Source: Epiperipatus broadwayi (Eukaryota; Animalia; Onychophora). From it: DNA of 64,000 bases. The number at the start of each line of letters is the position of its first letter. The first letter of the stretch is position 1. Positions 2,860 to 50,641 of the stretch are shown here, in pieces. The notes under the pieces were generated by a model. It did not search any database. It worked only from the letters and a program-made list of their open reading frames with translations, and was not told the origin of the DNA. A program made the translations under genes and the position numbers. The stretch covers positions 19,034,001-19,098,000 of the forward strand of contig JAQFVV010000003.1 in assembly GCA_028023455.1 (NCBI GenBank), written 5' to 3'.

Positions 2860-3575
2860 AAACAAAACCGACCGGTACAGTAAACTGATGCTAGAAGGCT
2901 GTACATGTTAATTCCTATCTAGTGCCTACTCATCCAATATTTTTGGACTACTTTCTAGCTTATGACTTTCATCAGTGAATGGGTGCAGGAGTGTATTAAA
3001 TCCAAAAATTACTCTCAGATCCAAGACTCCTCCATGATGATGAAAGCCCTAAACTAGAAACTAGTCTGGGGATATTGAATGTGTAGGCATTAGATAGTGA
3101 TTAATATGCACAACCTTCTAGCATCTATTAATTATTATAGCTTGCATTAGATGGCACTATTGTGCAGAAAAAGCTGTTAAGCTTGTGTAAGCATAAAAAG
3201 TGAGTAGGAGTTGTTTTAATGGTCTAATACTAATCTTAGCCAAAGGATATTGATGATTATAGTTATTAAAAAATCAAATACAGTGAAATATATAAATACT
3301 GAACTGGATTGGACTGAAAACATTTGTTGTGATTTTAATTTAGATTCATAGTTTTATAGTTAATTAAAAAGGTGAGTGCTGGAGAAGTGCACTAAAGATT
3401 GGATGCATTGCTTTCAGATACAAGACTCCTCACTGGTAAAACTCATAAGTTAGAAAGTAGTCTGGGGATATTGGATAAATAGGTATTAGATAGGGATTAA
3501 TATTCACAATCTTCTAGTATCGTTTGATTACTATAGCTTGCTTTAGATGGTACTAATATGTGGAAAAGTTGCTGC
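2860..3575. mobile_element. Retrozyme-like family A locus: inverted partial copy (~2860-2978, minus) plus ~1.5 tandem monomers (plus)
   Basis: Homologous to the 5.4-6.7 kb repeat. HHR-like cores at 2946-2975 (minus), 3013-3082 and 3413-3476 (plus). The plus-strand GTC sites at 3064-3066 and 3460-3462 are 396 nt apart. Old, diverged copies. Confidence 0.8.
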
Positions 3576-5526
3576 CATTTTAAGATATCTATAATAATTT
3601 TTTTTGAAAATTCATTAAATCATATATTCTTTTTAAATACTAGATAGATAATAAAATTTTCCAAATAAAATGTATAAATTAATTTATAATACTTATATAA
3701 AAATAATAATAAACAATTTTAACAAGATTCGTTAAAAATAATCCAATGGTTCATTGCTTAAAAGTTTGTAAGTTCAGGCAACGAAGTGATGGACCTGTCC
3801 AATATCTATGGACCTTGAGTTCCAGTCTGCCACTCTATTACAGCAAGTACCTAAAGAAATTAATAAAAATTACTAATTAAAAACAATATTAATGAACAAT
3901 ACAGTAATATTATCTAATTATAGGGAGGGGCTTTGGAAATTTTTTCAAAAGTTCCAACTAGACTTAAGATTTTTCTCTCAAGTAGCTATCTAATATTTCT
4001 TGCTAAACTGATGGTATTAAATAGAATATAATGGTTCCAGGATAATTTTGATTGTCAGATAAGTGTAACTGCACTCACTATAAAAAATATCACAATTGTA
4101 ATATAATGTGGCCTTCTCTATAGGTGATGAAAAATGTTCTATGATTGCTGAGAAATATGGTTTACTTATATTTTTTAACAGTAATTTTAAGTTAGAATTG
4201 AAATTATATAAAAGATTATCATTTTGCTCAAATAAGAAAATTTGAAAGTTTTAAATTTCAGGTAGATATTGCTAGAAAATTTTGCATGACGACTGACACA
4301 AATTTTTTTTAAAGATATATGTAGGAACAAATGGTATTAAATGTACAAATAAAACTAGTGATTCCTAGCCAGTCCATCTTACCCAAGCATAAAGACTTAA
4401 TTGATATATGTACTCAATACATTCAAAAAGATACCTTTTCCAGAAGTGACAAAAAGTTCAAAGACCATTTAATTTTTGATAAAAGAAAAAATATATATAA
4501 TTAAAAAACCAATACTTATAAAGTGCAATTATAAATAAAGTAGATTATGGTAAAAGAATTCATAATCAACTTAATGATAATATATCTTTGAAAGAGACAA
4601 CAGATAAGTAAATTAATGAAATCATAGAAAAATTATTAGCTAGGCTTATGGTATAAAGTTTTGCATATCTTCTTGCTATAAACCGAGTTTAAAATCTGGA
4701 TGATCTTTGAGAAAAAAAATTTCCCATCATGTTTAGGATATTAACAGCCAGTCAAGTTAGTCATTCAATTATTGATAAACACATATTAGCTATTATTAAT
4801 TAAAAGATAAAGATCTCAGACTAATGTGATTATATGAGTGTCAACGAAACTGATTAAAATAAACATTTACCCAAGTAAGATAACTGTCATACCCCTATAA
4901 CTGCTGAGTCCATGATTTAAAATTTTATCTAAGGATTCATTATGTAGACAATCCAAGAGATATATTGCTTCAAATAATAGCTCTCACATTATTTAATAAT
5001 ATCATAAATATTAACTTTGTAATACTAAAGATATTACTATATTCCAACATCCAAATGACACAATCATCACTGCCATTGAAAAGCAGTGACATATAGAAAA
5101 CAATAAGTATAACAATATATATATATATATATAAACAAAATATAATAATGGAAAGTATTACATATGGAAGTGAGGTAAAGAATGAAGAGAATTGATGGCT
5201 AGAGAAATGAATAACTGAGGAAGATCAAAGACAGTATGCACAAACAGAAGTAATAAATACTGATCATACTATAATAAATGCCATCAGAATAATTGGAATA
5301 CTATTGACATGTCTGGAGGAAATCTTACCACAACACATTAAACTGGTTACCAATTCCCCCTTCCCCCAAAAAAAAGTTAGAAAGGAATAGATAGAGAAAT
5401 TGTGACAAAATTTGCAGGAAGATTCAGAGGCAAAACTCTCCATACAGTAGAGCCACTCAGTGCAAGCCAGAGTAATCAATGGATGCAGGAAGGTTTGTGC
5501 ATAAAATTCCTATCCAGTGCTTAGTG

Positions 5527-5590
5527 ATCCAATATCTCCAGACTACTTTCTAGCTTGTGGCTTTCATCAGTGAGGAGCCTTGGATCTGAG
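5527..5590 (-). ncRNA. Type I hammerhead ribozyme-like motif (family A)
   Basis: Minus strand reads ctcagatccaaggctcctca-CTGATGA-aagccacaagcta-GAAAg-ta-GTC-tggagatattggat. Stem I pairs cctca/tggag and atccaa/ttggat; stem II is agc-cacaa-gct. C15.2 is mutated to G. Confidence 0.8.
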
Positions 5591-6086
5591 AGTACTTCAC
5601 CTAGATCTTAGGATCTAATGCAACTCTCCAGCAATCACCTTTTACTTTTTTAGATAACTATAAAGCTTTGAGTACAAAATGAAAACAATGTTTTCAAGCT
5701 AAGCTTTTTAGTTCTCAGTTTAGCATTCATACTTTTTGGTGTCTGGTTTTTTAATAACCATAGTCATCATAATCTTATTGGGCAGGATTAATATTAAACC
5801 ATTAAACATCACATGATCACCATTTTTTATGCTTTTACAAGCTATTATTCACAGAGGCAAAACTATCCATATAGTAGCTCAATAGGATTATAGTGACTGA
5901 TTATTAAAGAACCAGACACCAAAAAATATGGATTCTAAACTGAGTTCAGATCTATACAAGTTAATAAGCTTTGCTTGAAAACATTATTGTGTTTTCATTT
6001 TGGACTCAAAGCTTTATAGTTAGCTAAAAAGGTAAAAGGTGACTGTTGGAAGATTGCAATAGATCCTAAGATCTACATGCAGTGCT

Positions 6087-6153
6087 CTCAGATCCAAGCC
6101 TCCTCACTGATGAAAGCCACAAAATAGAAACTAGTCTGAGAATATTGGATGAG
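6087..6153 (+). ncRNA. Type I hammerhead ribozyme-like motif (family A)
   Basis: ctcagatccaagcctcctca-CTGATGA(6107-6113)-aagccacaaaata-GAAAC-ta-GTC(6134-6136)-tgagaatattggatgag. Core intact, stem II decayed. Confidence 0.8.
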
Positions 6154-6495
6154 TAGAAACTAGATAGGGATTTTATGCACAAACATTCCTGCATCCATTG
6201 ATTACTCTGTCTTGCACTGAGTGGTGCTACAGTATGGAGTTTTGCCTGTGTGAATAATACTGTAAGCATAAAGAATGGTGTTCATGTGATGTTTGATGGA
6301 TTAATATTAATCCTGCCCAATAGGATTATGGTGACTATGGTTATTAAAGAACCAAAGACAACTGAGTTCAGATCTATACAACTATACAAGCTAATGATAT
6401 TGTGTTTTCATTTTGGACTCAAAGCTTTATAATTAAGTAAAAGGTTACTTACTGCTAGAGGGTTGCATTAGATTCTAAGATCTAGGTGCAGTGCT

Positions 6496-6561
6496 CTCAG
6501 ATCCAAGGCTCCTCACTGATAAAAGCCATAACTAGAAACTAGTCTGGGGATATTGGATGAG
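6496..6561 (+). ncRNA. Type I hammerhead ribozyme-like motif (family A), G8A mutant
   Basis: ctcagatccaaggctcctca-CTGATAA-aagccataacta-GAAAC-ta-GTC(6542-6544)-tggggatattggatgag. Stem I is well formed; the core G8 is lost. Confidence 0.75.
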
Positions 6562-7810
6562 TAGGCACTCAATAGGGATTTTATGCACAACCCTTCCTGC
6601 ATCAATTGATTACTCTAGCTTGAGTGGTGCTACTGTATGGAGAGTTTTGCCTTTGTAAATAACAGCTTGTGTAAGCATAAAGAATGGTGATCATGTGTTG
6701 CAGGAAAATTATGGATGAGTGGAGAGGCATGGCAAATGGAAGATGTTATATAGCTTTATAGACTAATGAAAAGATAGAACACAAAAATTCTGTTTTATTC
6801 CTTTATTACATTTTGACTGTTATCACACAATCTTGAGTCAAACATTTAATTTAATAATTTCCTGAAAGAAAAAAGCTTTTAGTATTGTACCTTAAATTTC
6901 TTATAAATTTAGCACTGTAATCCATGTTGAAAGAAATTGAATTTTAGTATCGTACCTTAAATTTCTGTCTAAATTTAACACTGTAATTTAGTGGTGTTAA
7001 GTGTGCTTTATAAAGTGAAATAAATATTGCATTATATCATAAAAAATATATATATTGAGGATATGTCTAAGATAATTACATTATCCTTACCGAGAAATTT
7101 TTTAGTTGAATAATGTTTCTTAAAAAAAATTATACTTTTATGTGTAATACAAATGTAGTATATTTAATTTAGTGTAAAATATTACAAATGAGAAGAAAAA
7201 TATTCTACATTTATTTTACAAACCATAAGTCAAATCTAAGACACAAAAACCAAGACAGATCAGTATCATTTTTTTAGCTTCCTTAATTATTCAGCTGAAT
7301 CTACAAGTAATTAAAATTATATATAATTTCAATATTTTAAAACTTTTTGGTTTAATAACATTGAAAGAATTTATAATATTTATATCAACACATTTAAAAC
7401 CATTAGTACTTACTGCTTATAAATTAATATGGTCATCCCATCTCCGAAAAAAAAGATATAAATAATATCAAATAGTTATAGTTAAGTTTTGCAATGCCTA
7501 TATAAACAAATCTGTGAATAACAAATATGTCCATATTAACTTTTTTTTAAAGTCCTACAATGCTAACTTGAAATTTTTCAGCAATAAACTTTTATGAAAA
7601 TTTTCTACATCTTGTGTAACTGTAATTCTCTATCCTGATATATTTCAATAAAAATAATCGACTTCTTTAGGGTTTCTTTTAAAATATTTTTTATAACATA
7701 AATTTAAGTTTATCTCTTCCACAAAAATCATGATCAAGTTAATAGTAAATTGTATTTTAAAAAGCCTGTTTAGCTTTTATAGTTGTAGAAATGGGATCTC
7801 TAAGATTTCG

Positions 7811-8020
7811 AATAAAATTTACATAACTTCACAACAAATTAAAATGAAATTGAATATAAGCAAGTATACTTAAATACTATCAATAATAGTAATGTAATAT
7901 GGCTATGATTATTATAAGCATTGTACTGAAAGCATGTCCAGCATGAATAAAGCCAATTTTTAAAATAACGTATATACTTTTTCTTTATAAATGTCTGAAC
8001 ATTTATATGTTTAAAATTGA
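7811..8020 (+). repeat. Dispersed ~210-bp repeat, second copy at ~12352-12550
   Basis: Both copies share aataaaatttacataact...gaatataagc.agtatacttaaatac...taaatgtctgaacatttatatgtttaaaat in direct orientation. Confidence 0.8.
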
Positions 8021-8109
8021 AATATATGTGGAAAAAAGGAATGAAGTTAATGTATGATTTATTAATTTTAAAATTTGAATTTAGATGTTGAAGTTAGGAG
8101 ATATAAAAG

Positions 8110-8780
8110 TTATATAATATTCAATTGTCCAAACACTTTACTACTTTTACAATGCTTTATTATCCATCCTTTCCTACAGTTAACAGTTTCGATTGCCCCA
8201 GCAATCTTCTTGAGAACTACAACATTATACAAACATACGAGTATAAATATACATGAACATATAATTTACAATCTATATACATCTTATATCTTTATTTTAC
8301 ATTATTCTTATTCATTTCTTATCCTTTTACATTCTATATTTATTAATCAAAATATTTCCTATCCTTTTATATACACACATACATATACACACACATATAT
8401 ATACATACATATATATATTTCCCATATATATATATTCTACTTTTATTCTTTATTTTATCCTATTCTCATAATATAACTCTAAGTTAATATCTTTCATATT
8501 TTACATTATTATTATTCACTTTACTAACAATTATTCAATAACTTATAATCTATTTTACTTTATAGTATAATTCTAAGCACCTTTGTTATCTCCTAACCTC
8601 AATGCTAAATTCAAATTTTAAAAATCTTAAAAAATTTAAAAAAAACCCAAAAATTATATTATAAAGTAAAATAGATTATAAGTTATTGAATAATAATAAT
8701 AATGTAAAATATGAAAGATATTAACTTAGAGTTATATATTATGAGAATAGGATAAAATAAAAAATAAAACTAGAATATAA
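8110..8780 (-). mobile_element. Non-coding PLE pseudo-LTR-like repeat with a minimal HHR and a terminal fold-back
   Basis: The reverse complement matches 11340-11630 and resembles the PLE pLTR (aataatgtaaaata...tgttgtag-HHR). HHR at 8178-8219. Inverted arms at 8431-8572 and 8652-8779. Confidence 0.7.
8178..8219 (-). ncRNA. Minimal PLE-type hammerhead motif (G5C mutant)
   Basis: Minus strand reads tagtt-CTcAAGA-a-gattgc-tggg-gcaatc-GAAAC-t-GTT-aactg, with a 6-bp stem II and a 5-bp stem I (tagtt/aactg). Confidence 0.7.
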
Positions 8781-11339
8781 ATTGTGAAGGTAGCTCAAAA
8801 TCGCTCCCACAACAAACCTTAGCCATCTGAAATGATAGATTTTATATGTAATTAGCATATAAAGATCAAGTTTTGCTAGAACACTTTTGGAGAAAATAAA
8901 TGTTTTGATATTTTTAAGTGTATTAATTACATATTAAGTATTGGGAATGATGGGTAATTTACAGTGAAAAACACATTTATATTAGTAATAAAATTTTATT
9001 GTTTAAGAAAATATAAACTTGGATAAAAATTATACATATTTATATATATTGATAATTGTGTTGTGTTGATTACGTTAAAAAGACAAGGACTTAAATAAAA
9101 AATAATCATAGCAATAAAAAAATAAACCAAGTATTGTAATATCTGAATGTAACAGGGATAATATTGCAAATTTATTTTATAATTTGTTTTTTTAAATGAA
9201 TCTATATAAAAAAATATTTTAAAAGATACAATGATAGGAATGCTAGTTTTTTTCTTTCTTATTCTGCATTTGACAAGAAAAGTCATCTTATTGAAGCAAT
9301 TATTATTTTAATATTTTTCTGCAAAATGGACATTTTTTAATGCAGCGTCTCAACAAATATTAATGTTTTTCTAGTTAATTTGGAAAAGGAGTAAAGGAAA
9401 TGAATGGAACATTATCTAATTTAGTAATCAGATAAGTTAAAGTAATTTATCAATTTAAATTTTAAAAAAAGTATTATGATTTTTGTTTAAAAGAAACTAA
9501 AAAAAGAAATCAGAACAGTTTATTTAAAGTTTATATAGCCAATATTACAAATAATAAATAGCTGTACTCTATAAATATATTTTTATTAAATGCAAACCAC
9601 ATATATATTTATATAAACCTGTGTATATAGTTAAAATATGAGATACATTGGCTAGAAGGATTGTCTTTGGGGTGGAGCATTTTTTTCGATTCACTATGGC
9701 CATGTGAAAATCAATATTTAACTGTCTACAATTTAAATGCCTGAGAAGCTGGATCCACACAAGATGGAAATCTACGTGAGGAGTAACCCAAAACTACCTA
9801 CTGTCAACTTAAATAAGTTCAAAATGTGCTATATAAAATCAATCAGGAGTTTTTCAACATCTATAATAAAAAATACATAAACCATAAGAACTGTTTGTGT
9901 AAGAAGGACTCTGAAAAATAGTGATGCTTGATTATATCAATTCATAAAAGATTGTAAAATTATGTTTATTTTCTTTTGTATAGATTTGTATTTTTATTTT
10001 ATTATCTCGATCTTATATTTGGGAAGTACTACTTTTAATCCAACATGGAACAGTTTAACGTAAGAAAATATCAAGACAGTAGGGGAGGGGAAGGTTGAAA
10101 TTTTTTTAATAAAATCTAGGTACTTTCTGCTCAAGATACTTGATTTTTCATCTATGAACATGAAATTAAGTACTTTAACAGAATAATTAAATGGTAAGAG
10201 TTTTTCTTTTTTTAAAGTCACTGAAATAATCAATGCCACAACATGACATGACTTACTTGTAGTTATAGTATGTTTTACTAACAGTATTCTTAAGATCTTT
10301 ATAATGAATGAATGTTTTTAAATTAATATTCTTTATAATTTTCTATTCTATCATATCCTGTGTTATTTTATTATTATACTTAAATTTGCATACTACATCT
10401 GAAGTTGCATTTAAGTTTTCATTGAGTTAGCAATCTCACTTTTAATTAATATTTTTATTATTTTGGATATATAGGTCTATATTATGGGTGTCTATCATAG
10501 GAAGGGCGAATAATTTTAAATTGTTTAAGAAAAGAAATGATAGATACTCATCATAGACATAAAAGCTATAAGTACATAGGGATATATTCAAATAATTTAT
10601 TTGCATTTGTAAATATGTTTCTTTTTTGAAATTTTTCTTTTTTACATTGATTGAGAATTTATTTTATGTTTGAATATATTTTATTTTTTTGTAAATAAAT
10701 ATTATGAAGTTTTGTTAATTGACAAGGTCTCTGTAGTTTTGTTGATTCAGCATTTACATTCAATCCAGCATTTACATTCCATCCTATAACCAATATTTTA
10801 CACATGCACACACCCACATTACTGTTTGATAAGCATGTGAGAAAATGTTTAATAAAGGTTATTTCTTTCTAATAGATAGGATGTATTATTTAGTTGTTGA
10901 TTAACAATTTCATAGATACATACCTGTTAAGAGAGTCAAATGCAATGGTTTTGAAAAAGAGTGGTGAGATATTATATGAACTGATTTAAATTATATGTAG
11001 ATATGATGGATAATGCTTAGACTAGTCTATTAAAGATGGATGTAATCCTGAGTCAGGTATTTCATTGTTATCGCTAGCATCCTACATGAAGACCCTAGGT
11101 CCGACAGTAGTTAGATGCGAACATGCTCTCTTTCTCCTACATATGTGGATGAACCAAACTGTTACATTTGGCACTATCAACTTTAGGATATGAAAGATAG
11201 GTGTACCAATACTTTTAGATTTGATGTAAGTTGATTATACATTGTGGTCGAACCAGCTGATTGTTGAAGTTGATAGAGGTATCCAGGTGTATTTTCGGAT
11301 TGGGGCATCTGAGTATATTCCATCAACCGTTACAATATA

Positions 11340-11830
11340 TATGGAAAATATATATATAGATGTATGTGTATATATAAGGGTAGGAAATATTTTAATTAAT
11401 AAATATAGAAAGTAAAAGGGTAAGAAATGAATAACAATAATGTAAAATAAAGATATTATAAGATGTATATAGATTGTAAATGATATGTTCATGTATATTT
11501 ATACTCATATGTTTGTATTATGTTGTAGTTCTGAAGATTGCTGGGGCAATCAAAACTGTTAACTGCAGGAAAGAGTGGATAATAAAGCTTTGTAAAAGTA
11601 GTAAAGTGTTTGGTCAATTGAATATTATATGATATACATTGGGCAATGCAATAGGAAACAGTGGTTATTATACTTCTTGAAGAAGACATAAAAGTTCTGA
11701 AGAAGATTACAGGGGCAATCAAAACTGTAAAAGAGGGTGGTAAATAAAGCATTGTGTAACAGTAATAAAGTGCATGGATGATTCAATATTATATGGTATA
11801 CATTTGGCAATGCAATAAGAAAGAGTAATT
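11340..11830 (+). mobile_element. Second copy of the PLE pLTR-like repeat with two tandem degenerate HHRs
   Basis: gtt-ctgaag(aag)att.c.ggggcaatc-aaaac-tgt at 11531 and 11697, a spacing of 166 nt. Both copies have G12A. Confidence 0.7.
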
Positions 11831-12882
11831 AGAAAAGGAATGGGAAAATATTGTAAGCTATAAAAATGTGGATTTGGAGCAAAATAGTAAAATTAGAAAA
11901 CAAGTTTAGATACATAGTTATATTGAAAAAAGTTAATGAAAAAGATTAATTATTAAAAAAATTTATAAAAGATACTGGATTGGACATGAATGTAGAATAT
12001 TTATGAAGGAAATATTTTAACTGTAGATGTGTAAACAAGTTGATGGATGGCTTTATGGAAAGTGGTAAATATGACTTAAAAAACAATGATAGTACTTTGA
12101 GAAAGTAGTATATGACCTACTTTTTGAGCAGGTATTAATAATGTTTAAATACAAAAATTAAGAAATAATAAAAAAAGTCATACATTGTGAAATTTTCTTC
12201 AGTTGACTAACTATATAATTAATAGTGTAATTTTAAATTTAGGAAGATATGAAAAAAATAAGATTATTAATTAAATTTTAAAATCCTCTTGGTCAAATTT
12301 TAATTTGATGGTGAGTGATAGATATTTTATATTAATTATATAAAGATTTCAAATAAAATTTACATAACTACAAAACAAATGAATTTGAATATAAGCGAGT
12401 ATACTTAAATACCACTAATAATAATAATATAGTATAGCTATGATTATGGTACACATTGTATTGAAAGTGTGCTCAGTATGAACAAAGCCATTTTTAAAAA
12501 TAACATCTACTTTTTCTTAATAAATGTCTGAACATTTATATGTTTAAAATAACAAGTGCAGTGAAAAGAGATGATATTAAATGAATTACATATATATTGT
12601 ATTCTTTAGCTGCATCTCCTGTTTCTCTCTTTTTTTTTATATTTCTTTTTGATATCTTTTGCTGTTGTTCTCTCTAGTTTGATTGATAGACAATCTTTGT
12701 TTAATTTTATTTGAAATTCAAACAGAATTAAATTAGAACATTACTAACTAATCGAAGCTTTGGCAAAAAAAATAAAAAATTGAAACTATAATTTTAAAAA
12801 TATATCATGATATACTATACAAAGATAGCTGGTAGAAAAAAGCAGCAATTGACTAACTACAAAAGATAAGCATAAATAACCC

Positions 12883-15800
12883 AACAATAAAAAGATTATT
12901 TTTTCATACATAAAGAAAACTCAAGAATTAAAAAAAAATTATATTACCTTTATTTTAATTCTCTAAGTGAAGGGGAAATGTAAGATGAGACCTTACATAC
13001 CATCAAAAAATCCACATGCCTACATCTATCTTAAAGACTTATCACTAATAAAAACCAATTTAGGTCACAACCTAAATATCAATACCCTTCATGCTTAACA
13101 CTAGTTGAATTAATATGCTGAATTGTGACAATTTAATGACTTCGTTTTGTAATTGAATTTATTATAGGGGGTGGGGGAATTAATTTTTTTTTGTGTGGTA
13201 AGGTTTCAATATTCAGGCATTGTATGTCCCGTGAATTTTTTCTCCACAATCTAACCAATACGCATTTGGGCCTGCACACTTGATAGTAAATGATCGTTCA
13301 TATTGCAGAACTTATGAAATATAAACTTTTATGGTTTACTGACATGTAGGCATTTTACGAACACTTTATCCCCTATTTTTAATTGGTAATTTGACTTTTT
13401 TTATTGTGGTTTTGGGTCATTTGTACCATCTTTTTGAATGTCTCCTTCCAATCTCTTTCAGAGTCTATAGGTGGTTGTGTTTTTGTGATTATTGGTATGT
13501 ATTTTTGAAATAAGATTGGAATGTTTTGGTTCAATTGTAGTCTAATGAGTATTGCAACAGAAACCAGGTTTGAACCCTATTACAAGTTAAATGGATTCTA
13601 AGTAGCCATGCATATGTAGATATGGTAATTAGACACATATTTTAAGGTATATATTTGATTATGTCAAAATGATTAAATAAACTAAAACTGGCTTAAAGAT
13701 GGAATCAAGCAGTAACAAATGCTGTGATTTCTGTTGACATCATGCTTATAATTTTTACACAATTTAAAAAAGAAAAAAATTCAACAAATCAGCTGACACA
13801 AACAAATGACTCACTACAAAGACTCAATCCGGTTAAATAAGATTCAAAGTTATCAAATATGCTTAAAAGCCAAGCCAGTAAATGGGAATTATTTTGGTTC
13901 ACTAACCAGAAAGACCAAATGAGATCTTAGCTATAAATTTTTATGGACCCTTACCTCCATCAAATAAACAAGTATCTATTACTAGCTTATGATCTCTTCA
14001 AAATTTGTGTCAGCTTACTCAATGCCCCAAACTAATATTAGACATACTATCAAAATATTAGACATCCTCCATCTTAAAGAGAGGAAAATCTAAGGTGATC
14101 TTAATCGATTGTGGTATACTTTCCTATTTAAAGAATGGAATGGGTAGAGAAACACCAAATAAAACATGCTTCTATTAGAAATCCACAGACAAACCCGTAT
14201 GAACATCTAATGTGGAAACATTAAAGGGTCGGCAAAGCACACACATAGCACAGTCGACTACATAAATTGGAGTGTTAACAAATGCAAGAGATTCACACCC
14301 TTTAGACTACAATTGAACCATTTTGGGCACCATTGTAACGGGTTACCTCCCTTTCCCAAGTGCTTGGTTGGATTTACACTATCTAAATAAAATATTTCTC
14401 TTTATATTATATTTACCAATGACAAGATTTATTCATGAGCAAAACCATTTAAACCACTGAGATGGCCTTATAAACCTGGAGGCAAGTTATTTTAAAACTT
14501 CATCTCCCAAAGAACAAAATTAAAGAGTAGACATAATGATATATGTATATAGATACTCGGCCTTAGTTTCTCATAATTACTAATTAACTTTTTCCTAACA
14601 ATATATTTATGGACATTGCCCCCCCCCCGACTCCAAATGCTGGTCCTATGCTTGCATAAGAATTATACTGAAAGTGTCGAGGAGCATAATCATAGTGTGA
14701 TAATGAATGCCTGACCTCTAGCTAGCTTATTCAGGGCAGGTAGTACTTAGACTGACAGAGACGTGATATTTAAGGTAGTATGAATCAAATTATTCAATAA
14801 CTAAAAGCATATGTACATTTTTAAACTAAATAAATAATTATGAAATATATAAATAACAGTGCTCAAATATATATATATTTACAGACAAAATTGTTAGTTA
14901 TTACAAATATTAAAGTTTATTTTTAATATTACTAGTATGATTTAATATAAAGAAATTACAATCTATAAATATAATATTGAGAATGTGCATGATTATAAGT
15001 CTGGAATAACATATGTATTACCTTTGGATCCCCAGAGAAATTAGATTGTTCAGATTCCTAAAGAAAGTAAGCATATTCAGGAAACACTATGGCCACAGAA
15101 ATTGTTCAGAAAGAATATCTTTGCCTTTTAAAATTTTCGACGGCACAATGCTGAATCAGGATACTTGCAGAGATGCAGATGGATGGATGCGTATTTTTTT
15201 TTTTGCTTTGGATAGATATAGGATCATATAGCAGCTTTTTGTTTTCTTTGTGGAGCAGTGGGATACCCAGCATGTTTAGGACTTTACCCCAACATATTCA
15301 TGTTAGCTGGCAAATATATATTTTCTTCCAAAATCATAAGTTAAAAATCTCCAATATCAATTTATACACAGTAGCGGAAATATCAGCAGAATAACTAAAT
15401 TCGGTCTCCTGATTTTTCTATTTATACCTTTTATTTTTCTAGAAAGTTCTATTCTCTTCAAAATGTTCGATATTAAAATTAAATCTTATCCTGTGTGATC
15501 TTAGGTATGGCTTCTTTTGTCTTATTCTTTTTTTTTTTACAAAGAAAACCTTTTAGCAAGTTTTTTTTCTATCTTAAAAAGTTTCATTAGACACCTTTAA
15601 AAATAACTTTAAACAATACCTACTGTAAAAGCATTCCATGGATAACATTTGTTTCATTTCACATCATTTACATATTTGCTTTTAAAATAAAATTATACAC
15701 ACAATTTAAAAAAAAATACAATATATGGTTTTCCAGAAGATTCTTTTTTGTACATTTGATTATATAATATATACATACACATATTCCATTAAAATAAATA

Positions 15801-23941: not shown

Positions 23942-26900
23942 ATGGAAAAGTGAACTTTAATAGTTATTTTAAAACAATAAGAAAGCAAACCCTTTAGATG
24001 AGAAGTTTAGTTGAAGGAACTTTGCAGATAAACAAGGTATGTAATTAAAAAGTATTCAGGCTGCAAAGATAATTAATCGAACTAAGAATTAAGTCTAAAT
24101 CCCTACTGCACGTGAACTGGGAGTGATTGATCCGACTAGGTCGGATAAAATGTGACCAATCAAATCCAGGAAATGAGCAGAATGGAAAATGAGTGCAATG
24201 TAAAAAATTTGGGACATTAATAACTTGAAGCTCTACCACTGCAGATGGACTTTTAAAAAGGCGCTGAACATCGCTTTATACAGCACAGTATCTTCAGAGC
24301 GGACTGCTCGCATCAGAACGTCCGTCAGCATAGGGACTGTAAAGCAGGTCATATCGATTCTTTACTATAGTTTTTGTATGCCTTCGGGCTTTATGGCATA
24401 AATGTATAATTATATTAATGTGTCTGTGTAATTATATTTAATGTATAATTAATATTTCTTTTCCTCATGTTTTGTAATTAAAATTGCACTTACTAATTCC
24501 ACTACCGTTAGTCTTATTGGGTTATAAATATTGTGTACCTATATAGGCAGGGTAAGGTTAGTCCCCTGCATAGATTGTTCATCAGCAGGTATTATAACTG
24601 GTGGACATATCATTTGGCGCAGTCGAGTACAAACCTAGTTAAAACTAGTGGCGTGCATTAAAATTGCTGTTATTCGCCATTTACTCAAGCAGGAAATTTA
24701 TTAAGTACAGTGGTCTAGGTATAATGGATAAATTGAATATGGCCATTAGTGAATTCGATGTAAATGAGACGAGCAGTTGGCCATTGTATGTCGAACATAT
24801 AGAAAAATATCTCTTCATTAATAGTCGAAGATGATAAGTACAAAATAGCCACCGTATTGTTTTGTGGGTAAAATAGTTATAGAAATCGTTTAGTAGCATC
24901 TTTAACCCCTGATGCTCATACGATTTCAAAAAGCGATTGGGTAATTATTTTAACCCCACTCCTTCACATCATGTTGCTAGACTGCAGTACCACCACCATC
25001 TATAAGCTAGAAATGAAACGATCAAGGATTTTGATTGTGCAGTGCAAATGTTAGCTAAAAACTGTGTGTATGATTCTTACCTAGATGACTCTCTCCTTGA
25101 ACAGTTAAAGACAGGCATAAACAGCGACATCTTGCATCAACAGTTACTGTCGATAACAAATCTCGATTATACGGCAGCAATCAAACGTAACAAAGCCTAT
25201 GAGCTCGTTTTGGAACAATCCAACAAATATGCAGAATTCAATAAGGGGAAAATAAGCAGACCAAAGTTTACAAAATTTTCAAAACAGTGAAATAGAAATC
25301 ACAAAAAATAATGAAAGAAATGGCAATAGCAAGGAAGATAGCAATAATAGTAGAAAGCCTGTTATCAGTTTTTGTTGTGAAAAAAGAACATAAAGCCACT
25401 AATTGCTATTTTAGATGCAAACAATATAAATTATGTAATAAGAAGGGGCATAGACAAAACATGTTGGAAAGGAAAAAATGAAACCCTACACACAAAAAAC
25501 AGTCCTATCTGTAAATTGCAGGGAAAGAAAAACAGTTTACAATGATCAATAATACAGTGACAAATCATAATGATAAAATAATTATAAAAGTGAAAAGACA
25601 GTGGGAACAGTATAAACCTGATTTCACTACGCAATTGGCAGACTGTTACAGCAAATTGTAAGCAAAAACCTGCAATAGTAAAAACTGATACGAAAGCGTT
25701 ATGACGTAAATGGCAATGCTATTAAAATAAAGGGCATGGTTAAAGCTCAAGTAAACAGTCAGGGAAAAAATTGTCAATTTACCGCTATACATAGTACACG
25801 CCTGGTAAACCCATTAACCGGCCATGAGTGGTTTAACAATTTAGGGATTAGATTGACATTTGTACAAAAGGTCGAGTTAGAAAAATTAATGGAAAATAAA
25901 TTTCCAAATTTATTTAATGGGGAGCCAGGAATTACTAAAACTACACCGGTATCATTACAAATGAGCACATCAGCGCTACCCATAATTTGCAAACCTAGAA
26001 AGGTATCATTTGCCCAGAAGATAAAAGTAGAAAAAGAAATTGACGACATCATCAAGAAAAGGGTGTTGAAACCCACTGAAATCAGATTGGGCCACCTCAG
26101 TAGTCATCATAACTAAACCTAATGGTCAGATACGCTTGTGTGAGGATTACGGGGTAATGGTAAATAAAGCATTAAACAAGAGCATCTACCCTGTACCAAA
26201 CGCTAGAGAACTGATTGCTTCATTACAAAAATTTAATTTCTTTGTGAAGTTAGACCTTAACGCTGCATTCCATCAAATACCAGTTACCGAGGAAGCGTCT
26301 AGGATAATATCACTACGCATGTTGGGCTATACAAATGTTAAAGACTATCACTCGGAATAACGTCGGCCCCTGCATATTTCAGTCGGAAATCAAAACCCTC
26401 CTAAACGGATTGGATGGGGAAATACCATATTTTGATGACATCCTAGTAACAGCAACCAAAGACAAAGAACTTAGAAGCCAAATAGATATGTGAACAGCTA
26501 AATGAATTTAGCGCAAAGCTGAATACTCAAAAATGCATTTGGAAAACTAAGGAAATTAAATTCCTGGGCCACATTATATCGAGAAGTGGCACATCCCCTT
26601 CCCCAGAAAAAGCTAAATCAGTAGCAGAAGCACCAAGACTCACAAACGTGAAGCAACTACAAGCTTTCCTAGACTTCAATTTTTTTGAAATCTTTTTAAA
26701 AGGAAAAGCCCAAGTGGCCATTCCTTTATACAATCTGCTGAGGAAAAACTAAAAATGGAAATGGGATGAGCACGAAGAAGCAGCATTTATTCTCACTAAA
26801 GTGCTGCTGACGTCAGAGAAATTATTAGTACATTATAACAGTGATCTGAAAATTATTTTGACCACCAACACATCTGAATTTGGGGTGGGACAGTACTAAG

Positions 26901-29900
26901 TCACCCAGCCCAGTAAGAAGAGAGACCCATAGCATATGCTTCACGCACATTGTCCAAGGCAGAAAAAAAAACTATAGCCAGTTGGACAAGGAAGCCCTCG
27001 CAATTTTGTTTGGAATGAAAAAATTCCAATATCTATATGGGAGGAAATTTACTATTATAACAGACCACAAACCTCTGCTGGGGATATTTGGAAATAAGCA
27101 TGCACCTGACCACTTAAGCCCGCAAATGGTGTTGGCATAACATTCTCGCGTGCTGTTAGTCTGGAATGCAAAATGGGAAAACAAATTGGGCATGCAGATG
27201 CGTTTTCACACATGCCCGATCTTTGTGAAGCACCAGTATTAGAAAGAGAAATAAATTATATAGATGTACTTCAGAAGCAAAACTTAAATAGCAAAATTGT
27301 ACCTCGATGGACAAATGACGGCTATCAGTGGATAATAAATAAGATCAGAGGATGGCCGAACAAACGTCCAAGTTTTCTCAGACAATTATGGAACGCTCAT
27401 GAACAGTTATCGGTATGTAAAGGCTGCATTCTGAGGGTTGACCAAGTGCTGAAACATGTGGTCGGGAGACAACATATACTAATTTGCTGCATTATGAGGA
27501 CAAAAGCCCTAGCCTGTAGCCTTATATGGTGGCCAAACATCAATGGCGACTTAGAAAGATATATAAAGAAATGTGAGAATTGCCAGCAGTGCACTAAGGC
27601 ACCCCTGCCAACTTTTGAAACATGGCCAAAATACAGACCACTGTCCTCCACTTGAAGGCCATTTATTTCTAGTTGTAGCCTACTCTTATTCAGGGTGGGC
27701 TGAGTATAAAATAATGAAAAATATCAGCACTGATGTAACAGTTGGCACTTTGTATGAGATTTTTGCTAATCATGGGTTCCCAGAAACTTTAGTCCCAGAT
27801 AATGGAACAGGTTTCACATCAAAAAAGTTTGCAGAGGCAAATGCAAGAATGGGGGGGGGGGGAGTTACCACCCCCAATCAAATAGACTGGCTGAGAGCAG
27901 TGCAAAGCCTAAAGTCAGCTATAAAAAAAATGGGGAAAACAAAAATTCACGAAGCCACCAGCATTCTATCCCAGTGGCCAAATCAGGAAAATCACCAGCG
28001 GACATATTTAGGCAGAAAACTACCAACGAAACTTGCAAAAATAGTGACAACAAAACAATGTGATAAATAACAGTTGTTGTACAAATTCCAGCCACAAGAG
28101 TGTGGGTAAAGGACACACTAAGAAATCAATGGCTACCACAAGTTATTCACCATCTGTCAAAACAAAACATGACAGTTCACAGACGATGGGAAGATAAAAA
28201 AACATGTGAACCAGCTATTGAGAAATGAAAGTGACGACTGGATTCCAAATGTAGGCACAACAGAAACTAACGAGACACTAAATAATGATACCAAATGGGA
28301 AATTTGCGCCACCCAAGAAACTGATCTTCAATTTAATACTTGGTCTACAGAGAAGTCACCACTACAAATGGGAAATAGTTCACAAGAACTACTAAAAAGG
28401 AAAATAAAAATCCCCAAATATTTGAATAATTATATTCTAGGTTCAAGGACTAATAAATAATCTTCGAACTTGGGGGAAGTATTGTTATGTGTGTGTATAA
28501 TTAAAACACACATACACGCAAAGTAATAATAATAAATGTTGTAAATGTGAATTTAATATTTAAACGTATGTACGTGTATATAATTTATCCCACATACATA
28601 AGTTATATACACATGAAGGATAAAAAATACTTCTTTATGAAAAAGCGAATTTTAATAGTTGTGTTATTTTAGAATAGTAAGAAAGCAAATCCCTTTAGAT
28701 GAGAAGTTTAGTTGACGAAGGAACTTTGTAGATAAACAAGGTGTGTAATTAAAAATGAATTCAGGCTGCAAAGATAATTAATCAAACTAAGACTTAAGTC
28801 TAAATCCCTACTGCACGTGAACTGGGAGTGATTGATCCGACCAAGTCAGACAAATGTGAACAATCAAATCCAAGGAATGAAGACCATGGAAAATGAGTGT
28901 AGTGTAAAGAATTTGGGACACTAGTAACTTGAAGCTCTACTGCTGCAGATGGATTTTTAAAAGGCACTGAACATCACTTTATATAGCACGGTATTAGAGC
29001 GGACAGCTAGCATCCAAATGTCCAAGCATCAGCATGGGGACTGTAAAGCAGGTCATACCCATCTTTATTAGTTTTTGCATGCCTTCGGATTTTATGGCGT
29101 AAACATATAATTATATTAATGTGTTTGTGTAATTATATTTAATGTATATTTCTTTTGCTCGTGTACTGTAATTAAAATGGCACTTACTAATTCTACCGGC
29201 GTTAGTTTTATTGGGTTATAAATATTGTGTACTTGTATATGCAGGGTAAGGTTACCCACCTGCATAGATTGTCCATCAGTGGTTATTATAACTGGCAGAC
29301 ATATCACAATCAAAACAATACTACATCAAAGATGTGGTATTTAAATCAATATTCAGATTTTTCTTATCTATAAAGGAACTTTAAAAAAAAATCGATAATG
29401 GGGATTAAGTGGGTTTTTTTACAAACAAATAAATCAATTTATGTATTTTGTCAAAATAATACAGGTGATTTTTAGATAATTTTAACATATAAATAATAGC
29501 AACTATTTTTTTAAAATGTTAGCATGATGGGGAAAAGGACGGGTCACCACTATTTCTTATTGTTGTTTCCCCAAATTCTGCAAAACATCTTAATTCAAAA
29601 TTTATATCTAATTTACTGAAAAGAAATGATCATTTTTTTTGTCCAAAATCTGCAAAACAACTTCTTTCTAAAGTAGACATCAAATTTATTCAATATCTTC
29701 AGCAGTGAATGGAGACTGTTCATGACTTCTCCAAATATCAACAAATGTTCCTGAGTGCCTACTAAATAATTACCTGCGCTATGGGATTAGAAAGAGAGAG
29801 AGAAGCAATTTAACTTTTTTTGTAATTCAAAATTTATTTATAAAATAGTATTTATAAATTACTTTACTTAAAACAAAACTAAAATCTTTGATTATTTCAT

Positions 29901-30046: not shown

Positions 30047-33000
30047 TGTAATGAACACAGACGTTCGTTACATTGTTTTTTTTTATTTATTAAACATGAA
30101 AGTAAATTAAAAAGTTCGCATTTAAAAATTTTCTTTAAGAATTAAAAATTGAAATTAAATATCATCTTAAACTCGTATATATTAAATCGCACAGATAAAA
30201 AAAAATTTATTAAAATAAAACTGTATTAAAAATAGAAAAGGTATTTTAAAAACAAAAACTTAATAAGATTTAGAGATAAAAATATATCTTTGATTTGGAA
30301 AACAGGTTAATTAATCAGAAATGGAAATGATTGTTAATTAGTTAAATGTAAACCAGCCTTGGGCATTTAAATGTAAAAACATCGGTCAGATAGGGAAACA
30401 ATAGAAACTTTTAGCAAATGAAATAAATCCATTGGGAAATCGGACCTCAACGAAAAGGATCATCACATCGATGACGTAATGTTAAGTCAATCTTTCAAAG
30501 TAATATAAAAGGACAAGTTTGGAAATTATTAGTTAGTGAGTTATTATGATTATTACGATGTGACAGATAGATGTTAGTGCGGAGGTGCGGGAGAAGAGAT
30601 TGAAGGACGCACGTTCAATCCCTTCAGTTTTGCTAGTAAAGAAAGAGAAATGAACTATCGTTTTTCTACATTGAGGACCAGTTAAAACAAAAACCTCCGG
30701 ATGGATAAATAAATCGGCCAACAGAATATCAATCTTAGGACGGCGTGGGAATTCACGTTCATGGCAAGCAACGGAAAAAGATGAACATTTCTAAAACCGT
30801 AAGAACTTTCTAAGATAGATATAACGAACAATATTAATTTGAAAACACTAAGAACTTTAAATTTTAAACTTTCCTAGTATTTAATTGTTACAAATAGAAT
30901 CCTATCTGACCAAACTAAATTCTTTATTAATAGTGTTATTTGATGTATTTTTTTCCTTATTTATGTAAAATCATTTCCATTTATTTATTTTTTATTCTTT
31001 AAGTTTTTATCATGATTTTTTTTTTTTTTTCCGTTAAATTAATTATATAAATGTTAAACTTAAGTCGGGCGTGAATGGCTGTATAGATTTGTAAAGTTAT
31101 ATTAGGGGAGGGTAATCTTGGGTTATTTGTTTCGTGGTTAAATTGGGTCAATGGATTGGATATATTGGTGTGATTAGTAGATGTAATATTGATTCGCTAC
31201 GGGCAGAATTGCTTCATACGCCGCACACTTCCGTTTGCCTATGGAAGGAATTATAAGTCGGATACCGCAGTTCCTTTCTATGGAGTTTTTTGTTTTATTG
31301 CTCTTCTTTGCAGATAGATGTAATATTCCTATCTCATAAGAGGCAATTTCTTCTCTTAACCTTTTGTGCTGCCGTATTTTATTACATTGAATACATCGAT
31401 ATATCAGATAAATTGATGCCAGTTTGACTACGAATTTTAGCCTAAGGTTAAATAGGGATAGAATGTTTATTTTCAAAAGCAAATTTATGTGGTCTATTCA
31501 TACTCGACCCTAAATAAAAATGCAGTAAATTTAAGTTATTGGTGACAATGCAAGTATCTTATGGTGAATACTATTGGGTTACGTATAAATTTCCCTCCGC
31601 AATTGTCAGTAATCAATAATTTTGTATTTTGATCGTTTATGTTTATTTTGAAATGTTTTTGACCATGAAATCTATGTAACCGATCTATATTCAACATTAT
31701 AAACAAGCTTTCATAAATTTATCTGTGCGAACTTAATTAAAATGTAAACTTATAATATAATAGAAATTAAAATGAAAATTAAAATCTAAGGTAAAGTTAA
31801 AAATAATGTTAAATGTTAAAATGTAAAACTAATACTAAAATAATTTTAAATCTTATATATATGTGAAATAAATAAATGTTTGTGTGTTAATTACTGGCAG
31901 TGGCTTATTTTATTTATTTTTTAATGTTGAAATCTAATTAGATAAGATATGATATTATTAAATCTCTGCTACTCCCTGAGCTAGTGACATGGGCTAACGA
32001 CCGGAATCAAAATTTAAAAAAAAAAAAAAAAATTTTTTTTTTTTTTTGACTTTCGTATCTGCCTACTTTATAAATTTTTCTAGGTTCAAATGCCTAGATG
32101 GCGCCCTGTAGTGCAGTTTACGTTAAGTCGCCTTTCTCCGAATCGTTACAAAAAAAAAATCATGATAAAAACTTAAAGAATAAAAAATAAATAAATGGAA
32201 ATGATTTTACATAAATAAGGAAAAAAATACATCAAATAACACTATTAATAAAGAATTTAGTTTGGTCAGATAGGATTCTATTTGTAACAATTAAATACTA
32301 GGAAAGTTTAAAATTTAAAGTTCTTAGTGTTTTCAAATTAATATTGTTCGTTATATCTATCTTAGAAAGTTCTTACGGTTTTAGAAATGTTCATCTTTTT
32401 CCGTTGCTTGCCATGAACGTGAATTCCCACGCTGTCCTAAGATTGATATTCTGTTGGCCGATTTATTTATCCATCCGGAGGTTTTTGTTTTAACTGGTCC
32501 TCAATGTAGAAAAACGATAGTTCATTTCTCTTTCTTTACTAGCAAAACTGAAAGGATTGAACGTGCGTCCTTCAATCTCTTCTCCCGCACCTCCGCACTA
32601 ACATCTATCTGTCACATCGTAATAATCATAATAACTCACTAACTAATAATTTCCAAACTTGTCCTTTTATATTACTTTGAAAGATTGACTTAACATTACG
32701 TCATCGATGTGATGATCCTTTTCGTTGAGGTCCGATTTCCCAATGGATTTATTTCATTTGCTAAAAGTTTCTATTGTTTCCCTATCTGACCGATGTTTTT
32801 ACATTTAAATGCCCAAGGCTGGTTTACATTTAACTAATTAACAATCATTTCCATTTCTGATTAATTAACCTGTTTTCCAAATCAAAGATATATTTTTATC
32901 TCTAAATCTTTTTAAGTTTTTGTTTTTAAAATACCTTTTCTATTTTTAATACAGTTTTATTTTAATAAATTTTTTTTTATCTATGCGATTTAATATATAC

Positions 33001-33128
33001 GAGTTTAAGATGATATTTAATTTCAATTTTTAATTCTTAAAGAAAATTTTTAAATGCGAACTTTTTAATTTACTTTCATGTTTAATAAATAAAAAAAAAC
33101 AATGTAACGAACGTCTGTGTTCGTTACA
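30047..33128. mobile_element. Foldback element with ~980-bp near-identical inverted arms, TGT...ACA termini and a 4-bp TSD (Ginger-like, non-autonomous)
   Basis: Arms ~30047-31025 and ~32150-33128 differ at only a handful of positions. Ends are tgtaatgaacacagacgttcgttaca and tgtaacgaacgtctgtgttcgttaca. aaag flanks both ends (30043-30046, 33129-33132). Confidence 0.85.
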
Positions 33129-39160: not shown

Positions 39161-39301
39161 TCACATGATCACCATCTCATGATAGCACATAATTGTTAGT
39201 AAACAGGCAAAAACTCTCCATATAGTAGTGCCTTCTGGCATCCATTGATTACTCTGGTTAGCACAAGGTGGCACTACTATATGGAGAGTTTTTGCCTGTT
39301 T
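39161..39301. mobile_element. Family A mini-insertion made only of two inverted 3' ends (no HHR), within the USP 5' region
   Basis: Perfect 32-bp inverted repeat, 39201-39232 vs 39270-39301 (aaacaggcaaaaactctccatatagtagtgcc). The left side is extended by the family tail tcacatgatcacca (39161). Confidence 0.85.
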
Positions 39302-40599
39302 ATATAAAGCTATATTTATCACAAATTTCCATAGTAAATTCTGTTGATAACAAAAAAAAAAGTTCGACAACTCTTAAATTGATGAATTTGTACATCATAC
39401 TATTAAAGCATTGGGATGAAATATATGTATAAAATCAAAATTATCTTAAAGGCAGTTCCCGTTTTGTTTTCATCACATACACAAAGTTATATTGTAACAG
39501 GTCAGACCAATTTATGCTGAAAAAAAAAAAGCATGGAAGATCCAATTTTAAACTAATCATCAGTAAGTCATTCGCCAATTCCTAATAAAGTAAAAAATAA
39601 TAAAAAGACGAAACAATACACTAGAAATGAGTTTAATGGTGACTGTATTTTGCGATACTATCTTTTAATTCTGTAATACTTTTCTTTCTGAAAAACTTGT
39701 CCAGTGTTTGCTCATTATATTCTATCTTCAATCATATTTTCAAATAAAAGCTATTGATATTGCATTTCTTTAATGACTGAAATAATCTTTACAATGAAGA
39801 TGGGGTCTACCTCTCGCACAAAAAGCCTTCTTTTTAGGTTGTCACGTTCATTCGTTTCGCATCACCCAATCTAACACGACGTGATTTTACAGTAGTCGAA
39901 TCCATATCACATTCAACAAACTGAAACATGTAACTGTCTTATGATCATGTCATTATATTTTTAAAATTTTATTGATCATGGCTTAAATAAAATGCTTCTA
40001 ACAAAAACTTATTGGAACAATTAAATAGTATAAAACAATCATTGAAGATTAGGAAGAAAATAATGGCACGCTACCACGGAAGATGATTGTCTATCTTTTC
40101 AATTCATTGTCAGAAGACTTTGAATTTATCTAACTTTTTCTCAGCAGGTTACTTAACAAAGGTATAAATGCTATTTACAAAACAGCACTAGGTTCGTTCG
40201 GTAAACTTTCTCATAATCGACATAAACATTAAAAATAAAGCATGTCGATTCTATAGAAAAGTTGATCCAAATAGTAAACTTTTATATATAATTTTCATTA
40301 ATTTCTCCACGTTAAGTTACTTGAAGAAATACTTCATAATATTTATAAATACTTTGTTACTGCTACATTTTTCAATTAAATTTAACTCATACAGAAAACG
40401 ATTTCAACAATAGACAATTAATACTTACTTAGCTCTTTTCAGAAATTCCTTAGCAATGTAATCTATAACAAGAAAAAAAATGAACTCGATAATAAGCTTA
40501 TATATAAATACAAAAACTGCATAAACAATTTCCATTTCATTAAAAAAAAAAACCCTTAAAACTTGAAAATTATTATTTTGCTTTGCCTTAATAATCAAG

Positions 40600-48621: not shown

Positions 48622-48661
48622 GTAGCTCTGATGAAGACTGCAGCACAGTTGAAACTGTTAG
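48622..48661 (+). ncRNA. Minimal HHR in the 5' pLTR; degenerate counterpart at 52409-52446 in the 3' pLTR
   Basis: ct-CTGATGA(48628-48634)-a-gactg-cagca-cagtt-GAAAC-t-GTT-ag. The 3' copy reads CTGATGA-a-gactg-cggga-tagtc-aaaac. HHRs in PLE pLTRs are established. Confidence 0.8.
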
Positions 48662-50404: not shown

Positions 50405-50641
50405 ATAAATATTACCAAAATCACACTTTTCTTTATTTTTACCGTAATATCCTATAAATACAATTTATCCAAACCGCTTCAAACACTTTACACATACGTT
50501 TCGACTTTTTTTTTTTTTTAGAAGATCAAAATAAACTTGCTCTGAAGAAGACTGCAGTTCAGTCGAAACGTAGGTGTATGTACAAATAAAGAGTTTTGCT
50601 AAAAAGTGTTTGAAGCGGTTTGGATAAGTTGTATTTATTGG
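50405..50641. mobile_element. 237-bp HHR-bearing fold-back mini-element inserted in the PLE YVDD motif
   Basis: TSD atgattattt (50395-50404, 50642-50651). Inverted arms 50454-50489 / 50603-50638 and 50490-50506 / 50561-50578. Confidence 0.85.
50537..50577 (+). ncRNA. Minimal hammerhead ribozyme with an intact core
   Basis: tgct-CTGAAGA(50542-50548)-a-GACTG-cagtt-CAGTC-GAAAC-GTA(50570-50572)-ggtg. Perfect 5-bp stem II and palindromic ACGT stem III. Confidence 0.85.

Follow-up and report, generated by a model that had tools for sequence, protein, structure and literature searches.

Anatomy of a two-armed, hammerhead-bearing insertion in the genome of Epiperipatus broadwayi, a probable non-autonomous passenger of Penelope-like elements

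What kind of element carries a hammerhead ribozyme (HHR) motif in each of its non-coding units, and how does such an element come to be inserted in an animal genome? This question is raised by positions 5425-6697 of a 64,000-nucleotide stretch of DNA (the window) from the onychophoran Epiperipatus broadwayi (GenBank assembly GCA_028023455.1, contig JAQFVV010000003.1, positions 19,034,001 to 19,098,000 of the forward strand). A preliminary description of the window had assigned the region to a family of ~400-nt tandem repeats with type I HHRs, a candidate retrozyme family. The locus is probably an old insertion of a high-copy, non-coding, HHR-bearing retroelement, that is, an animal retrozyme of the kind without long terminal repeats (non-LTR), which travels as a non-autonomous passenger of Penelope-like elements (PLEs). 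The first reading stands in that the repeat is non-coding, bears a type I HHR and is of the metazoan non-LTR retrozyme kind; its simple tandem architecture does not, since the loci consist instead of inverted arms and partial tandems.

Target-site duplications flank the main locus, so the coordinates 5425-6697 named in the preliminary description are the exact limits of the element. Its parts are as follows.

5412-5424: left target-site duplication, TTGCAGGAAGATT, repeated at 6698-6710 with one mismatch
5425-5880, minus strand: inverted arm, 5'-truncated (profile matches 5425-5789 and 5799-5880)
5524-5590, minus strand: HHR of the inverted arm; core boxes intact, C15.2 changed to G, fails the full hammerhead descriptor
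5877-6697, plus strand: direct arm, made up of a partial unit, a full 408-nt unit and a 3' portion (profile matches 5877-6299 and 6309-6700)
6087-6153, plus strand: first HHR of the direct arm; CUGAUGA, GAAAC and GUC intact, predicted cut after 6136
6137-6544, plus strand: 408-nt monomer between the two predicted cleavage sites
6496-6561, plus strand: second HHR of the direct arm, predicted cut after 6544
6698-6710: right target-site duplication, TTGCAGGAAAATT, the pair of 5412-5424

Family sequence is present on both strands of the element, and its inverted arms are complementary over 276 nt at 84% (5412-5687 and 5990-6265). The outward end of the inverted arm is a short 3' end without a tail (an S end; the reverse complement of ...GGAGAGTTTTGCCTCTG), and the direct arm finishes at a long, tailed 3' end (an L end), here cut at ...GGTGATCATGTG. 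In the HHR of the inverted arm, the C15.2 to G change disrupts the palindrome of helix III (GAAAGUAGUC). The first HHR of the direct arm includes an exact pattern match at 6107-6136, and the 3' strand of its helix II has mutated from GCU to AUA; in the second, G8 has become A (CUGAUAA) and 1 nt of helix II is deleted. With a disabling change in each of its three HHRs, the locus is a single old, dead insertion. If both ribozymes of the direct arm worked, the monomer between them would be released and circularized. This monomer is not markedly self-paired (fold of -101.4 kcal/mol, z -1.27); the monomer of an intact relative elsewhere in the genome (L004:1501-1957, minus strand) is markedly so (z -3.05).

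How far does the family extend? In the window, blastn with the monomer 6137-6544 finds copies at 2910-3541, 5425-6700, 39238-39307, 50774-51166, 53768-54392 and 63196-63386, and the family profile gives the same map, which agrees with the six loci noticed before. The earlier count of 11 HHR-like motifs is likewise reproduced, as a profile of the HHR region matches exactly 11 in the window.

2929-2979 (minus), 3014-3082 (plus), 3414-3477 (plus): HHR motifs of the 2.9-3.5 kb locus
5527-5590 (minus), 6087-6153 (plus), 6496-6561 (plus): HHR motifs of the main locus
50887-50953 (minus), 50956-51013 (plus): HHR motifs of the 50.8-kb locus
53953-54016 (plus), 54345-54406 (plus), 63239-63303 (plus): HHR motifs of the remaining loci

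The spacing from one HHR to the next inside the window is 400, 409 and 392 nt, and in the sampled loci same-strand HHR pairs (n=34) are spaced 366-458 nt apart, with a median of 430. Two of the monomer periods first given, 396 and 408-409 nt, are seen directly in a repeat search, and the other two (390 and 427 nt) lie within the range of the sampled pairs. The region had been described as having no open reading frame (ORF), and its ORFs are indeed at most 71 amino acids long and without a Pfam match. The majority sequence of 23 full units defines a family unit of ~446 nt with 40% GC. Units are 85-95% identical to this sequence (median 91.6%), and the family is old. The 446-nt majority contains zero CpG, and its 40% GC compares with 28% in the window; both values agree with a genome in which CpG is strongly depleted and decay is biased towards AT.

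Genome-wide (5.6 Gb), there are 6,071 exact matches to the 30-nt consensus core and none to a reversed 30-mer used as a control. A whole-genome search yields at least 5,583 first-look candidates, which are 75-83% identical to the window copy. The copies sampled for further analysis were picked by similarity to the window copy and not at random; 3 of 75 of them keep the exact core. Together with the 6,071 exact cores, this gives a rough total on the order of 10^5 family motifs, a figure that could be well off. A strict HHR pattern has one match in the window against 0.00 expected, and the full hammerhead descriptor has none in 200 dinucleotide shuffles of the 64-kb window. Because these controls and the reversed 30-mer are empty, a chance origin of the motif is excluded.

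Sequence related to the family is also found in the assembled contigs of four runs (their RNA or DNA origin is uncertain), of which 3,600-14,000 per run match it at 80-99% identity. These contigs carry many different flanks under four coded organism labels, and they show neither molecule ends nor reliable joints; by their labels, the family or close relatives of it appear to be common to several of the labelled organisms or samples. An excess of A>G and T>C differences in the contigs does not indicate editing, as the window copy has decayed with a bias towards AT, which accounts for it.

Is the motif really that of a hammerhead? When 75-79 copies are aligned, taken from the window and from 28 other loci, their majority sequence matches the HHR consensus of the preliminary description at every letter. 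In this majority the order is the 5' strand of stem I, CUGAUGA, A-AGC-CACAA-GCU-A, GAAAC, UA, GUC and the 3' strand of stem I. All positions of the hammerhead core (C3 U4 G5 A6 N7 G8 A9, G12 A13 A14, A15.1-U16.1 and H17) are present in the majority of 75 copies, and the helices have the type I order with helix I open-ended (helix I 6+6 bp, helix II 3 bp, helix III 2 bp). Stem I had been said to pair in two blocks around an internal loop, and it does so as 6 bp and 6 bp around a 3x2 loop. The exchange of a U.G pair for U-A, first noticed in one copy, is recurrent, with 58 UG and 11 UA copies at pair 18/62. In helix II, an AGC/GCU stem is flanked in the majority by an A.A mismatch, in the place of the canonical closing pair G10.1-C11.1. 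Helix III has 2 bp with a 2-nt loop; its sequence ACUAGU is self-complementary, so two motifs can form an intermolecular helix III of 6 bp (-6.2 kcal/mol). This is how double hammerheads are classically built among metazoan type I motifs (PMC4209133, PMC7229834).

Individual copies retain this design to different degrees. Of the stem cells, 88% are paired in the proper register; sliding the 3' partners lowers this share to 30-43%. The exact combination of CTGATGA, GAAA and CTAGTC is found in 25 of 71 parsed copies, and the full descriptor accepts 9 copies from the 28 other loci; two loci (L004 and L015) each contain two intact same-strand HHRs, 455-457 nt apart. None of the window copies passes, which bears out the earlier remark that no single copy there is fully intact; by the strict pattern, 6107-6136 alone retains every core box.

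How, then, are the copies arranged? In 30 genome loci, nearly every copy consists of one or more minus-strand units followed by one or more plus-strand units. Profile mapping of 38 complete insertions defines their anatomy. In 26 of the 38, an inverted 5'-truncated arm is joined to a partial-tandem arm with the 3' ends outward, and the 5'-truncated ends of the two arms meet in mid-insertion; about one quarter of the insertions are single-orientation 5'-truncated arms. Neighbouring HHR pairs are (-,+) in 24 cases versus (+,-) in 1. The outer ends of the inverted insertions are systematically unequal, with 19 S/L, 1 S/S and no L/L combinations. The S end is short and somewhat ragged (...GGAGAGTTT[TGCCTCTGTGAAAAA]), and the L end is sharp, at ...GATGTTTGATGGTTTA or ...GTGATGTTTGATGGTTTA, about 50-65 nt beyond the S end. 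Inner junctions lie at many positions of the unit, with an excess in the 5' part of the HHR and immediately upstream of it; only 1 of 67 arm 5' starts falls in the bin that contains the cleavage site. Arms can exceed one unit, which places two HHRs on the same strand at the spacing given above, and the arrays are short, mostly no more than 2-3 units per arm. Arms with and without a tail are alike in length. Target-site duplications measure 7-17 bp, with a mean of 10.7 nt versus 7.7 nt in mismatched-pair controls (p = 1.4e-6), and exceed the 95th percentile of the controls in 11 of 19 tested insertions. The copies are dispersed over many contigs, each within its own flanking sequence.

This anatomy resembles that of PLEs. 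Published PLE insertions combine units in partial tandem with a neighbouring copy that is inverted and 5'-truncated, and a tail of 30-40 bp is found on one side only (PMC8557442). In vitro work shows a PLE protein cutting the two strands of its target and extending each, with reverse transcription from two internal sites that bracket the tail (PMC11167929). Since the family combines a partial tandem, an inverted 5'-truncated copy and a one-sided tail, which are the published hallmarks, insertion mediated by PLEs is the most likely route. Assignment to the class of animal retrozymes is based on the anatomy of the motif, the 40% GC of the unit, duplications of more than 4 bp, the same-strand HHR pairs at 366-458 nt and coexistence with PLEs. 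A reading of the family as a short interspersed nuclear element (SINE) is unsupported: no poly(A) run follows the L ends, and boxes of an RNA polymerase III promoter were not searched for.

A pathway that would produce such insertions can be outlined. Transcripts of source copies with at least two HHRs would form double hammerheads by pairing in helix III and would be cleaved 3' of GUC, and the released, highly self-paired monomer of ~450 nt would then be circularized by a host RNA ligase. For insertion, the reverse transcriptase/GIY-YIG endonuclease of a PLE would cut both strands of the target and prime a cDNA on each, with two nearby internal starts on the retrozyme RNA. As template, an uncleaved RNA, either multimeric or circular, is likely, because arms exceed one unit and the ends of the cDNAs do not stop at the cleavage site. 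Judged from genomic sequence, every feature of the anatomy (3' ends of which one has a tail and the other none, arms of more than one unit, cDNA ends that do not accumulate where the ribozyme would cut, and duplications of variable length) would fit double-strand, target-primed reverse transcription by a PLE from two internal starts.

Are suitable PLEs present? The genome contains more than 10,000 GIY-YIG candidates, and opposite-strand neighbour pairs are (-,+) in all 20 of those listed. Tandem, intact PLE ORFs of 901 amino acids with a period of 3135 bp are found at L061:2501-8338 (G000:C12394:20944300-20950137) and also at L063 and L064. They contain a YVDD box and a GIY-YIG domain and are 97.6-100% identical between loci, and this PLE family is young and possibly active. 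A Pfam hmmscan of PLE ORFs of 875-901 amino acids returns no family, even at E<=10 for the 901-amino-acid ORF. Despite this, the genome search scores PF01541 at 39 bits in the reading frame of the 901-amino-acid ORF, in which YVDD is visible; the extreme K/N/I-rich composition of the protein may be the cause of the empty hmmscan.

A decayed PLE is also present in the window itself, at 48628-52450 on the plus strand, with tblastn homology at 48908-51812 to amino acids 92-869 of the intact PLE ORFs. It is flanked by minimal hammerheads of the PLE type at 48628 and 52415, in which A9 is followed by an additional A, helix II is GACUG/CAGUC and loop 3 is absent; a third lies at 50542. A copy of the retrozyme-like family (family A) at 50783-51158 splits its ORF. 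Homology to the PLE is colinear across this insertion, and the resumption of the ORF on the far side serves as a control, internal to the window, for the reading of the family copy as a discrete insertion into pre-existing sequence. The inserted copy is itself flanked by a 16-bp duplication, TTAGATATATTATTAA (50767-50782 and 51159-51174).

Other hammerhead families occur beside family A. One of these, family B, is a second, diverged retrozyme-like tandem in the window.

57614-58289, minus strand: family B, period 405-407 nt, 87-89% identity

Its HHR reads CUGAGGA-U-AGC-CAAUA-GCU-U-GAAAC, with a helix II of 3 bp and a U.U where family A has A.A, and the family A profile matches it weakly (E = 2.7e-12). 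A third hammerhead family is represented at L029:2485-2527 by a GC-rich, canonical type I HHR (CUGAGGA GUGCC AA GGCAC GAAAC CAUG GUC). The fourth, family C, is dispersed; its motif reads ggaccaa CUGAUGA U-UGC-UGGUUUA-GCA-U GAAA UACGUAUA uuggu, in which a 3-bp helix II has U.U as its basal mismatch and helix III is a palindrome of 8 nt. It is found at L018 (minus, 566), L029 (plus, 707), L037 (plus, 1169) and L043 (minus, 3082); two of these copies lie on the strand opposite to a GIY-YIG remnant and downstream of it, at a distance between a few hundred and 1,300 nt.

Several results weigh against the view that family A is a self-cleaving passenger of PLEs. The preliminary description had pointed to Rfam Hammerhead_1 (RF00163) as a check, and no match is obtained at the gathering score of 34 bits or at E<=10, either with 1.5 kb or with 96 nt of an intact copy. 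Under the same conditions the canonical hammerhead at L029:2485-2527, used as a positive control, scores 29.8 bits; thus, the search works, and the motif of family A must be regarded as atypical. Covariation, also named there, is not seen: stem cells are paired in 88.0% of cases versus 87.8% in shuffles, a value reached by 119 of 500. (In helix II, five cells have changed from A-U to G-C, probably in one subfamily event.) Nor are the core columns kept better than flanking columns of the same base. Similarity of the family to PLEs is absent as well, since neither blastn with the monomer nor nhmmer with the family profile against 30 GIY-YIG loci finds any in the PLE itself, and the same is true of nhmmer with the family profile against 8 loci with long PLE ORFs. 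The family matches that do occur in these 38 PLE loci, a small sample of the more than 10,000, look like separate family insertions. Finally, the tail measures about 50-60 nt here versus the published 30-40 bp. Weak matches to microRNA precursors in the Rfam search merely reflect the long inverted arms.

The preliminary description had held that a lack of covariation and of excess core conservation would speak against its ribozyme. Both are lacking, yet this is not taken as a refutation, because dead copies of a retroelement are expected to decay neutrally. The negative tests are read here as the mark of an atypical variant whose dead copies decay neutrally, not as evidence against the motif.

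The same results can be read differently. The family may descend from the terminal repeat of a hammerhead-bearing PLE, its HHR now being a non-catalytic fossil, and may spread as a PLE passenger without self-cleavage or circular RNA. Such a history would account for the weak helix II with its A.A mismatch, for the silence of Rfam beside a control of 29.8 bits, for the absence of both covariation and excess core conservation across copies, and for arm 5' starts that do not pile up at the cleavage site (the 1 of 67 noted above). It also agrees with work on PLEs, in which hammerhead mutants leave insertion in vitro unaffected and no Anolis reads end at the cleavage site (PMC11167929). However, the family majority and the 6,071 exact copies of the core retain a full core, three helices and the palindrome of helix III; family B, a relative in the same window, has the same design with U.U; and in axolotl a U.U mismatch in the corresponding position, at the base of helix II, does not prevent HHR_Amex2 from cleaving as a dimer (PMC7229834). 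A fossil hammerhead is considered unlikely.

These observations also lead to a more specific proposal, which is advanced only tentatively. The insertion anatomy may supply evidence, at the level of single insertions, for the movement of animal retrozymes. In addition, families A, B and C share a 3-bp helix II with a 1x1 mismatch, which is A.A in the first and U.U in the other two, and this design may constitute a working, lineage-specific variant of the double hammerhead that current covariance models miss.

A very different explanation is that the family is a foldback DNA transposon or miniature inverted-repeat transposable element (MITE), in which the arms are terminal inverted repeats and the HHR-like motif is incidental. 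Long inverted arms, such as the 276 nt at 84% complementarity of the main locus, and the presence of target-site duplications would be expected of such an element. However, inner junctions lie at many positions of the unit, the arms vary in length and in number of units, and about one quarter of the insertions are 5'-truncated arms in a single orientation. The termini are those of unequal partners (19 S/L, 1 S/S, 0 L/L) instead of identical terminal repeats, and the duplications range over 7-17 bp, whereas those of cut-and-paste families have a fixed length. Furthermore, the autonomous PLEs of the same genome follow the same (-,+) rule, and a DNA transposon is very improbable as the source. 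Still more improbable is a satellite or tandem repeat that owes its spread to unequal crossing-over and segmental duplication rather than to transposition, for although same-strand units do lie head to tail with periods of 366-458 nt, the arrays are short (mostly 2-3 units per arm or fewer), the dispersed copies have their own flanks with duplications above the 95th percentile of the controls in 11 of 19 cases, and one copy precisely interrupts a PLE ORF.

The other copies of family A in the window are as follows.

2870-3592: older family insertion with an inverted arm, a partial tandem and three HHRs; ~67% identity to the 6.1-kb monomer
39201-39312: mini-insertion of ~110 bp, two inverted 3'-end fragments, both ends of the short type
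50783-51158: 376-bp insertion, a minus arm and a plus arm with one HHR each; one S end and one L end
53811-54476, plus strand: same-orientation family copies with two HHRs and internal deletions (blastn and profile)
63175-63403, plus strand: single 5'-truncated arm with one HHR and a short end (blastn and profile)

The window also contains repeats of other kinds. A 979-nt inverted repeat, 99% complementary, has its arms at 30047-31025 and 32150-33128 with 1124 nt between them; it looks like a young foldback or terminal-inverted-repeat element that is unrelated to the retrozyme family. Inverted arms of ~280 nt at 8112-8387 and 11355-11630, 90-95% complementary and ~3 kb apart, are possibly the ends of a transposon of ~3.5 kb. 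Blocks at 24047-24612 and 28752-29306 lie at a constant offset of ~4.7 kb with 85-92% identity; either a segment was duplicated locally here, or a longer repeat is present twice. Finally, a 191-nt tandem repeat of 1.8 copies (87% matching) is present at 60634-60981.

The family makes up a sizeable part of a 5.6-Gb animal genome, and because it is so abundant it needs to be masked or annotated. Screens based on Rfam would miss its hammerhead variant entirely. Its two-armed, one-tailed insertions offer clean genomic support for the view that animal retrozymes are passengers of PLEs, and they suggest that the RNA template is not a linear monomer cleaved by the ribozyme.

How does the family compare with known systems? 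Retrozymes have been proposed to be non-autonomous derivatives of PLEs (discussion of PMC7229834), and a recent preprint argues that they derive from and depend on PLEs, on the basis of co-occurrence and of similarity between terminal repeats, mainly in vertebrates (bioRxiv 10.64898/2026.07.22.740005). The text of that preprint does not mention a tail and gives no account of the target-site duplications of retrozymes, so the insertion anatomy described here adds modestly to its case. Family A shares with PLEs the outward 3' ends, a tail at one end, an HHR in the repeated part and a palindromic 15.2-16.2/loop 3 (PMC8557442, PMC11167929, PMC4209133). Unlike PLEs, it has no ORF, and it combines a long stem I with a 3-bp helix II; the minimal HHR of PLEs, a type found in the same window at 48628 and 52415, has a helix II of 5-8 bp with G10.1-C11.1.

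The metazoan non-LTR retrozymes, with families in mussel, coral and axolotl, have less than 50% GC, duplications of more than 4 bp and coexisting PLEs (PMC7229834). Family A resembles them in its non-coding unit of a few hundred nucleotides with a type I HHR, in same-strand repeats that flank a monomer by two HHRs, in a highly self-paired monomer and in a short palindromic helix III that implies cleavage as a double hammerhead; with axolotl HHR_Amex2 it shares a mismatch at the base of helix II (PMC7229834). At the sequence level it agrees with the definition of a metazoan non-LTR retrozyme (PMC7229834), taken here as a non-coding repeat of about 170-450 nt that bears a type I HHR and whose same-strand HHRs, at least two, could release a monomer. 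It is not a new kind of system. It differs from the published retrozymes in its family-specific sequence, in a unit of ~446 nt, near the top of the range reported, and in its mostly short, two-armed inverted insertions in place of long tandem arrays, and it is known here from genomic sequence. The motif of family A also sets it apart, as it goes unscored by Rfam Hammerhead_1. The HHRs of newt satellite 2, Schistosoma Sm-alpha and cave-cricket pDo500 (RF00163) are of type I, with a very short helix III and activity as dimers. Rfam scores them, and their helix II is canonical, with 4 bp and G10.1-C11.1 as the closing pair. Family A differs in both respects; what it has in common with them is the type I topology and the very short helix III.

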